DNA of 64,000 nt from Mantamonas sphyraenae STR306 (Eukaryota; Protista; CRuMs). The notes under the pieces were generated by a model that worked only from the letters and a program-made list of their open reading frames with translations, searched no databases and was not told the DNA's origin. A program made the position numbers and the translations under genes. Shown piece by piece: positions 63,245-63,376 of the stretch. Where the stretch lies: assembly GCA_026936335.1 (NCBI GenBank), contig JAPMXV010000001.1, forward strand, positions 124,001-188,000. The letters run 5' to 3'. The number at the start of each line of letters is the position of its first letter. Within the stretch, counting starts at the first letter, position 1.

Positions 63245-63256
63245 AAAAAAAGAAAA
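63245..63256 (-). terminator. RNA polymerase III terminator (TTTTCTTTTTTT)
   Basis: T-run 4 nt downstream of the tRNA 3' end, in an otherwise GC-rich genome. Confidence 0.8.
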
Positions 63257-63260
63257 TGGT

Positions 63261-63376
63261 CACCCCCGACGGGATTCGAACCCGCAACCTCCCAGTACCC
63301 GAAGGACGATAGAAGCCGGGTGCGCTATCCAATTTGGCGGGGATGATTGTGCTAAAATCCCATGCGCCACAGGGGT
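63261..63376 (-). tRNA. trnR-UCU: tRNA-Arg(UCU) with two introns (D-loop 14/15: 63334-63362; anticodon loop 37/38: 63297-63309)
   Basis: After removing both inserts: ACCCCTG TG GCGC AATTGGATA GCGC A CCCGG CTTCTAA CTGGG AGGTT GCGGG TTCGAAT CCCGT CGGGGGT G, with all four stems pairing. Confidence 0.9.

Follow-up and report, generated by a model that had tools for sequence, protein, structure and literature searches.

In Cyanidioschyzon merolae, 27 nuclear tRNA genes hold 42 introns, 14 of which lie in the D-loop (PMC3728597). The tRNA-Arg(UCU) gene of this alga carries a D-loop intron of 69 nucleotides (nt), the longest in that genome (Soma et al. 2013, PMC3728597). Permuted tRNA genes are also present in C. 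merolae, the splicing of its atypical introns was shown by reverse transcription-polymerase chain reaction (RT-PCR) and northern blots, and the intron at position 37/38 is always removed last (PMC3728597). Further non-canonical cases were described from cryptophyte and chlorarachniophyte nucleomorphs, prasinophytes, and Chondrus (PMC4090602, PMC13578239). The hosts of all these cases are algae or algal relics. The locus described here is a tRNA-Arg(UCU) gene of Mantamonas sphyraenae STR306 that contains two inserts, one of 29 nt and one of 13 nt. It lies in a 64,000-nt stretch of DNA, hereafter the window (contig JAPMXV010000001.1, positions 124,001 to 188,000, assembly GCA_026936335.1). Judged from its sequence and its genomic setting, the locus is probably (at a rough probability of 0.78) a functional, single-copy nuclear tRNA-Arg(UCU) gene with two introns, which would serve as the decoder of AGA and be processed as described below.

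Several features are shared with C. merolae. Both genomes have a nuclear Arg(UCU) gene with a D-loop intron, two-intron tRNA genes, relaxed bulge-helix-bulge (BHB) motifs of the BHL type, and coexisting permuted genes, and in both genomes such tRNA genes are missed by standard gene finders. The differences lie in the host and in the extent of gene disruption. Mantamonas is a heterotrophic CRuMs flagellate and not an alga, its D-loop intron is 29 nt and not 69 nt, and disrupted genes are a minority among the Mantamonas genes examined, whereas they make up about 63% in C. merolae. Sen15 is present in Mantamonas and was not found in C. merolae. Splicing was shown on RNA in C. merolae and is predicted from DNA in Mantamonas.

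Non-canonical introns of archaea (Crenarchaeota and others; hBHBh' and HBh' motifs) resemble the 29-nt insert in four respects: a 4-bp central helix, cut sites that lie two bases 3' of this helix in both strands, a position outside the anticodon loop, and an exon drawn from its mature pairing into the motif. In contrast to these, the Mantamonas gene is eukaryotic and nuclear, has a T-run in the style of RNA polymerase III genes, lacks the outer helix, and occurs with a four-subunit eukaryotic enzyme set instead of the symmetric archaeal EndA. The canonical eukaryotic 37/38 intron, as in human and yeast Arg(UCU), is matched by the 13-nt insert in position, in the C32:G pair, and in the use of the anticodon stem as outer helix. 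It differs from the first Mantamonas intron, which is in the D-loop, where the mature-domain ruler cannot apply. Among permuted genes (C. merolae, Ostreococcus/Micromonas, chlorarachniophyte nucleomorphs), the counterpart in Mantamonas is tRNA-Pro(UGG), which is permuted; Arg(UCU) itself is collinear.

Anatomy, predicted splice motifs, and copy number of the tRNA-Arg(UCU) gene

Read directly from the sequence, the gene occupies 116 nt of the minus strand, from 63376 to 63261, including both inserts (all features of the gene are on this strand). Exon 1 (63363..63376) supplies tRNA positions 1-14: the acceptor 5' strand ACCCCUG, U8 and G9, the D-stem strand GCGC, and A14. It pairs with 63262-63268 to give a 7-bp acceptor stem. 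The D-loop intron of 29 nt (63334..63362) falls between positions 14 and 15 and is not present in the paralogous Arg(TCG) and Arg(ACG) genes. Exon 2 (63310..63333) covers positions 15-37, from the rest of the D-loop (G18, G19, A20) to the anticodon-loop bases; its parts are, in order, AUUGGAUA, GCGC, A26, the anticodon stem strand CCCGG, and the loop CUUCUA, with the anticodon UCU at 63311-63313. The canonical intron of 13 nt (63297..63309) follows at position 37/38. Exon 3 (63261..63296) covers positions 38-73 and contains A38, the anticodon stem 3' strand CUGGG, the variable loop AGGUU, the T arm GCGGG-UUCGAAU-CCCGU, the acceptor 3' strand CGGGGGU, and G73. In the DNA, ACCA comes after G73, and a T-run (TTTTCTTTTTTT; 63245..63256) starts four bases past G73. 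By established knowledge of polymerase III genes, this T-run is likely the terminator.

When both inserts were taken out a full cloverleaf was obtained, with a 7-bp acceptor stem, a 4-bp D-stem, a 5-bp anticodon stem, and a 5-bp T-stem, in agreement with the original prediction of a complete tRNA-Arg(UCU) made from this DNA alone. The conserved bases U8, A14, G18, G19, A20, U33, and those of the T-loop are all in place in the spliced sequence, and A20 is typical of arginine tRNAs. The tertiary partners A15-U48, C13-G22-G46, and G9 with G12-C23 are also present. The boundaries of the D-loop insert can be set without reference to any motif, by matching the D-loop to that of Arg(ACG). After removal of the 29 nt the D-loop reads AAUUGGAUA, identical to the uninterrupted Arg(ACG) D-loop of the same genome, and cutting in register therefore restores the textbook D-loop that had been anticipated. 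The D and T arms of the spliced sequence differ little from those of Arg(TCG).

Neither ARAGORN, run both with and without its intron mode, nor Rfam at its gathering score reported anything in the window. A permissive Rfam scan scored the gene at 20.7 bits, and did so only with part of the insert taken as a false acceptor strand. The intron opens with six bases (UGGGAU) that imitate the displaced D-loop, such that the DNA at 63357-63369 still reads TGGCGCATGGGAT, where the A-box region of Arg(TCG) reads TGGCGCAATGGAT. This mimicry may keep an A-box-like promoter element.

The pairings proposed for the 29-nt insert were all found. The central helix is formed by the exon strand G9 G10 C11 G12 (63365..63368) and the intron strand CGCC, intron bases 24-27 (63336..63339), with 4/4 pairs; in the ensemble for the whole 116-nt precursor its pair probability is 0.82-0.83. 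The inner helix is formed by GGGAU, intron bases 2-6 (63357..63361), and AUCCC, intron bases 19-23 (63340..63344), with 5/5 pairs and a pair probability of 0.76-0.83 in the same ensemble. On the 5' side the bulge C13 A14 / U (63362..63364) would be cut after A14, and on the 3' side the bulge or loop A A / A15 (63333..63335) would be cut before A15. Both predicted cuts fall after the second base of a 3-nt bulge and two bases 3' of the central helix. The 5' site is a 3-nt bulge in the local and in the constrained minimum-energy folds.

The description of the insert as an archaeal-type bulge-helix-bulge held in part. The splice register is exact, and the insert has what the relaxed motif calls for: a 4-bp central helix, sites two bases 3' of it, and a flanking helix of at least 2 bp. 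The strict archaeal hBHBh' form has in addition an outer helix of at least 2 bp adjoining the 3' bulge. Because this outer helix is missing, the D-loop motif is of the relaxed HBh' (BHL) form and not the strict one. Shuffles of the insert equalled the 4-bp central helix and the 5-bp flanking helix in 162 of 300,000 cases (p about 5e-4), with three registers and two orientations permitted. Folded as a whole, the precursor has a long-range alternative as its minimum-energy structure (-42.9), yet the motif pairs keep a probability of about 0.8 in the ensemble. When the acceptor stem and the T arm are enforced, both helices and the 5' bulge of 3 nt persist in the best fold.

The 13-nt insert is an ordinary eukaryote-type 37/38 intron, as proposed. 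In it C32 pairs with the G three bases before the 3' end, U33.G comes next, the outer helix is the intact 5-bp anticodon stem, and the central helix has only 2/4 pairs. On inspection by eye, no C/D or other boxes of a guide RNA were seen in the 29-nt intron.

Within the M. sphyraenae genome the gene is single-copy. This locus was the only match of a BLAST search with the gene, and likewise of a 35-nt pattern taken from its 3' part and allowed three mismatches. The suggested check for an uninterrupted Arg(UCU) gene was made with three pattern scans, which looked for a UCU anticodon loop correctly spaced from a T-loop. Genes that have a 37/38 intron and genes that lack one were both covered, as were strict and loose T-loops. 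No second Arg(UCU) gene was found in these scans of the genome; the extra matches were at or below control counts, were due to chance, and none was a tRNA. The locus is thus the only recognisable gene for its anticodon in M. sphyraenae. An own-genome Rfam search was incomplete (63 of 262 candidates were scored and Ala(CGC) was missed) and was therefore not relied on for absence. AGA decoding by standard rules needs a UCU anticodon. In the long open reading frames of the window AGA accounts for 16 of 10,814 codons (1.5 per 1000) and for 2.3% of Arg codons.

Independent sequence support, also called for by the original prediction, came from contigs assembled separately from runs X1 and X2 (depth 46 and 32). 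The contigs of both runs span the gene and carry the 29-nt and 13-nt inserts with 0 differences in the 116 nt of the gene, against 4-6 differences from the reference in about 785 nt of flank. An argument for allelic constraint from these flank differences was set aside, the variation being too little for significance. Contigs of run X3 end on either side of the tRNA locus (window 63201 and 63618), one with an Illumina adapter tail. These ends would fit a transcript-derived library that covers the flanking genes only.

Other disrupted tRNA genes and the splicing endonuclease

The prediction that further disrupted or permuted tRNA genes would be found in this genome was borne out by two tRNA-Met and four tRNA-Pro genes. 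Elongator tRNA-Met(CAU) is present in two copies, at G000:C54:420319-420420 (L032 101-202) and 426057-426158 (L033 101-202), each with a 29-nt D-arm insert at about position 22/23. The Met insert holds a hairpin of 6-7 bp capped by UUCG, and its central helix has 3/4 pairs. ARAGORN miscalls the disrupted Met(CAU) gene as Arg(tcg).

The tRNA-Pro(UGG) gene (G000:C42:619354-619432; L072 255-333) is circularly permuted, with positions 15-73 first, then a 7-nt linker, then positions 1-14. Its 14/15 junction is at the same position as the D-loop intron of Arg(UCU), exon bases 9-12 pair 4/4 (GGUC/GACU) with the four bases ending two before the 3' cut, and a helix is formed between leader and trailer. 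The shared junction and the shared pairing of exon bases 9-12 suggest one processing rule for Pro(UGG) and Arg(UCU). The tRNA-Pro(AGG) gene (G000:C70:284280-284403; L073 281-404) is permuted around a 49-nt linker with an 8-bp leader-trailer helix, and its junction is in the 3' side of the D arm. Permuted tRNA-Pro(CGG) is present in two copies, around G000:C70:110451-110535 (L177 172-256) and as an inverted twin near 118254 (L178), with the junction at G18/G19 and a 13-nt hairpin as linker. The motifs of Pro(AGG) and Pro(CGG) are looser than that of Pro(UGG). A strict BHB was rejected for Met, Pro(CGG), and Pro(AGG), in which the central helix has 3/4 pairs or less; these genes support an active pathway and not a strict motif rule.

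In total, 4/4 proline tRNA genes found carry a circular permutation in the D region, and no collinear proline tRNA gene was found in the genome in the tRNA lists and the T-loop pattern scans. D-region cutting and rejoining must therefore be active and essential in this organism. The tighter T-loop pattern gave 56 matches against 5 in controls and yielded both Pro(CGG) genes. With the looser pattern, 29 of 31 fetched matches were not tRNAs, and the remaining two were the ordinary Ala(CGC) gene and L157, which has a 5-bp T-stem and no other tRNA features. The 37/38 introns of Ile(UAU), Leu(CAA), and Leu(CAG) have the usual relaxed eukaryotic form, and that of Ser(CGA) is looser.

The genome holds two genes with an endonuclease catalytic domain. 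The Sen34 homologue has human Sen34 as its best match (2.5e-22) and keeps the active-site Tyr, His, and Lys in the alignment. The Sen2 homologue (best match Sen2, 9e-25; L141 1100-2712, G000:C62) has its catalytic domain interrupted by an intron, and His and Lys motifs are visible by eye in its second exon. A Sen54 homologue was matched in Pfam (2.3e-15) and in PDB (1.7e-19). A Sen15 homologue was matched in Pfam at 4e-11, above the curated cut-off, and in PDB at 6e-4; it is at G000:C54:408982-409763 (L143 1118-1899), about 1.5 kb from tRNA-Ser(CGA), and seemingly has one intron. These matches indicate that M. sphyraenae encodes the four-subunit endonuclease set Sen2, Sen34, Sen54, and Sen15. 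The original prediction supposed a broad-specificity TSEN; the set found is an ordinary one, and no special enzyme is therefore evident.

Some further tRNA genes were noted in the course of the scans. A tRNA-Ile(UAU) gene with a 46-nt 37/38 intron, miscalled Ala by ARAGORN, is at G000:C1:190556-190674 (L052 257-375), about 2.6 kb past the window end. The introns of Leu(CAG), 27 nt, and Leu(CAA), 41 nt, both begin with CGAA (L035, L036). The two Pro(CGG) genes sit in a perfect 1,435-nt inverted repeat with a spacer of 5,176 nt (L182 1853-3287 and 8464-9898, G000:C70). Inverted pairs with 4-13 kb between the members are formed by at least a dozen further tRNA genes of the Rfam list, among them C52:268318/273877, C60:19485/24430, and C34:412867/425295. 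Midway between an inverted pair of intact Ile(AAU) genes is the 3' two-thirds of a tRNA-Ile(AAU) (G000:C34:419036-419144; L037), which starts at the 3' strand of the D-stem and extends to the acceptor; a duplicated ATTGACCAA-TTTGTTTT comes after it. No recognisable 5' part was found upstream of this sequence, which may be either a truncated copy or a split gene.

Using the exon pattern with a gap, a metagenome search returned 65 loci, none of them from a relative; besides the Arg types, these were chance matches. About 40 of the 65 belong to one tRNA-Arg(CCU) gene type that has a 21-nt D-loop insert at the same place and occurs on AT-rich contigs (L075-L135, e.g. L075 1189-1229). This type is nearly unchanged across many freshwater, sediment, and groundwater metagenomes and is probably archaeal. 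Four loci (L082, L104, L120, and L129) are tRNA-Arg(UCU) genes with a D-loop intron of 37-40 nt and a 37/38 intron; L082 and L120 have a third intron, in the T-loop, and the L120 contig bears a prokaryote-type large signal recognition particle RNA. These four genes are archaeal-style analogues of the Mantamonas layout.

Proposed processing and alternative explanations

We infer the following course for the transcription of the gene, the two cuts, the ligation, and the order of the steps. The gene would be transcribed as a 116-nt body with both introns. In the precursor, exon bases 9-12 would pair with intron bases 24-27 in place of the D-stem, and intron bases 2-6 with 19-23. The active sites of Sen2 and Sen34 would then cut out the D-loop intron by local structure alone, and tRNA ligase would join A14 to A15. 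The D-arm could then form, and the 13-nt intron would leave by the usual route that depends on the mature domain. The predicted order, with the 37/38 intron last, is that of C. merolae. Recognition by local structure is suggested by the geometry of the precursor. The mature-domain ruler is provided by Sen54 (PMC10485636). With bases 9-12 held in the motif the D-stem would be unable to form, the ruler would therefore be without its reference point, and the D-loop intron would consequently have to be recognised by local structure. Cleavage of BHB substrates by the eukaryotic endonuclease is on record (Fabbri 1998, as cited in PMC4090602).

A number of observations weigh against a functional gene processed in this manner. 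With no outer helix, and with U8 able to pair with the first A, the 3' site falls in a loop in the folds and not in a closed 3-nt bulge. That outer helix has 0 contiguous pairs; the U8.U16 mismatch is followed by G.U, U.G, and C-G, and these weaker pairs would compete with the acceptor stem. Shuffled versions of the 47-nt region fold about as well as the region itself (z = -0.52), and the evidence is therefore the register and not stability. The A-box region is split by the D-loop intron. The Arg(UCU) scans assume a standard T-loop and a standard anticodon loop, and a permuted or split copy would escape them. The run search at the locus gave only contig-level matches, none recorded as RNA, and contigs show presence only. 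Lastly, an insertion in the D arm of a eukaryotic tRNA gene is usually read as a sign of a pseudogene (PMC4090602).

Some of these points bear on a first alternative, in which the gene is dead or dying: the 29-nt insertion would have disabled tRNA-Arg(UCU), and AGA would be read by another, undetected tRNA or be in the process of being lost. The usual meaning of D-arm insertions (PMC4090602), the rarity of AGA among Arg codons, the unexceptional folding energy, and scans that were less than exhaustive (a normal Ala(CGC) gene is missing from the Rfam-based list) all speak for this account. It is nevertheless unlikely. The remainder of the gene is without defect, the match of its insert to the splice register has a p of about 5e-4, AGA codons are used, and no other Arg(UCU) gene was found in the pattern scans. 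The marks of a pseudogene, namely redundancy, multiple copies, and broken stems, are absent from a gene that is single-copy, that has no synonymous gene found, and that has its stems intact. Its sequence is identical in two runs whose flanks differ. Furthermore, all proline tRNA genes found require the same kind of processing, and the pathway must accordingly be active.

Retention of the 29 nt as an enlarged D region, or their removal without the splicing endonuclease, is less probable again. The 3' site that is not in a closed bulge would be in keeping with either course. Retention would leave bases 9-12 blocked from the D-stem and G18 and G19 pushed 29 nt further from A14. Removal by another route has to account for a motif geometry that is the one used by the endonuclease, and the permuted proline genes can give a tRNA only if they too are cut and rejoined at a site of this kind. 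An assembly or polishing artefact, conceivable in that the reference is a long-read assembly (PMC10492846), has a negligible chance, since the separately assembled X1 and X2 contigs carry both inserts without a difference and assembly error is therefore excluded.

Host lineage and significance

The favoured explanation of the locus is a functional tRNA-Arg(UCU) gene with two introns, in a lineage where none was expected. Mantamonas is a heterotrophic gliding CRuMs flagellate at the base of Amorphea, and the FALCON assembly of M. sphyraenae comprises 25.06 Mb in 78 contigs with TTAGGG telomeres and 59% G+C (PMC10492846). The word tRNA is absent from the paper describing this genome (PMC10492846), and a search of the available literature found nothing linking Mantamonas or CRuMs to nuclear tRNA introns. 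The kind of gene is itself known; what is new is the host lineage and the coexistence of such genes with a complete four-subunit endonuclease.

Two recent reviews bear on this combination. According to a 2026 review, non-canonical tRNA introns of eukaryotes are confined to some unicellular algae, where they are rare exceptions (PMC13578239). The endonuclease was reviewed in 2023 with the proposal that the four-subunit enzyme, known from Amorphea only, is able to remove introns at 37/38 and nowhere else, and that non-canonical introns might accompany an enzyme of the two-subunit type (PMC10485636). Mantamonas would contradict both review statements (PMC13578239, PMC10485636): in this heterotroph from the sister group of Amorphea, which has all four subunit families, one tRNA-Arg, two tRNA-Met, and all Pro genes found have to be cut and rejoined in the D region. 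On balance it seems reasonably likely that disrupted tRNA genes, with ectopic BHB introns or circular permutation, are not limited to algae and occur in a plastid-free CRuMs flagellate with the full set of Sen2, Sen34, Sen54, and Sen15.

For genomes like that of Mantamonas, eukaryote-mode tRNA annotation under-calls genes. Mantamonas is culturable and has a near-complete genome, and the enzyme architecture that permits ectopic introns is therefore testable in it. If the reading given here is true, the four-subunit enzyme would be older than the split between CRuMs and Amorphea and would not by itself confine introns to 37/38, and its mode of cutting by structure alone would operate in vivo on the essential tRNAs Arg(UCU), Met, and every Pro.
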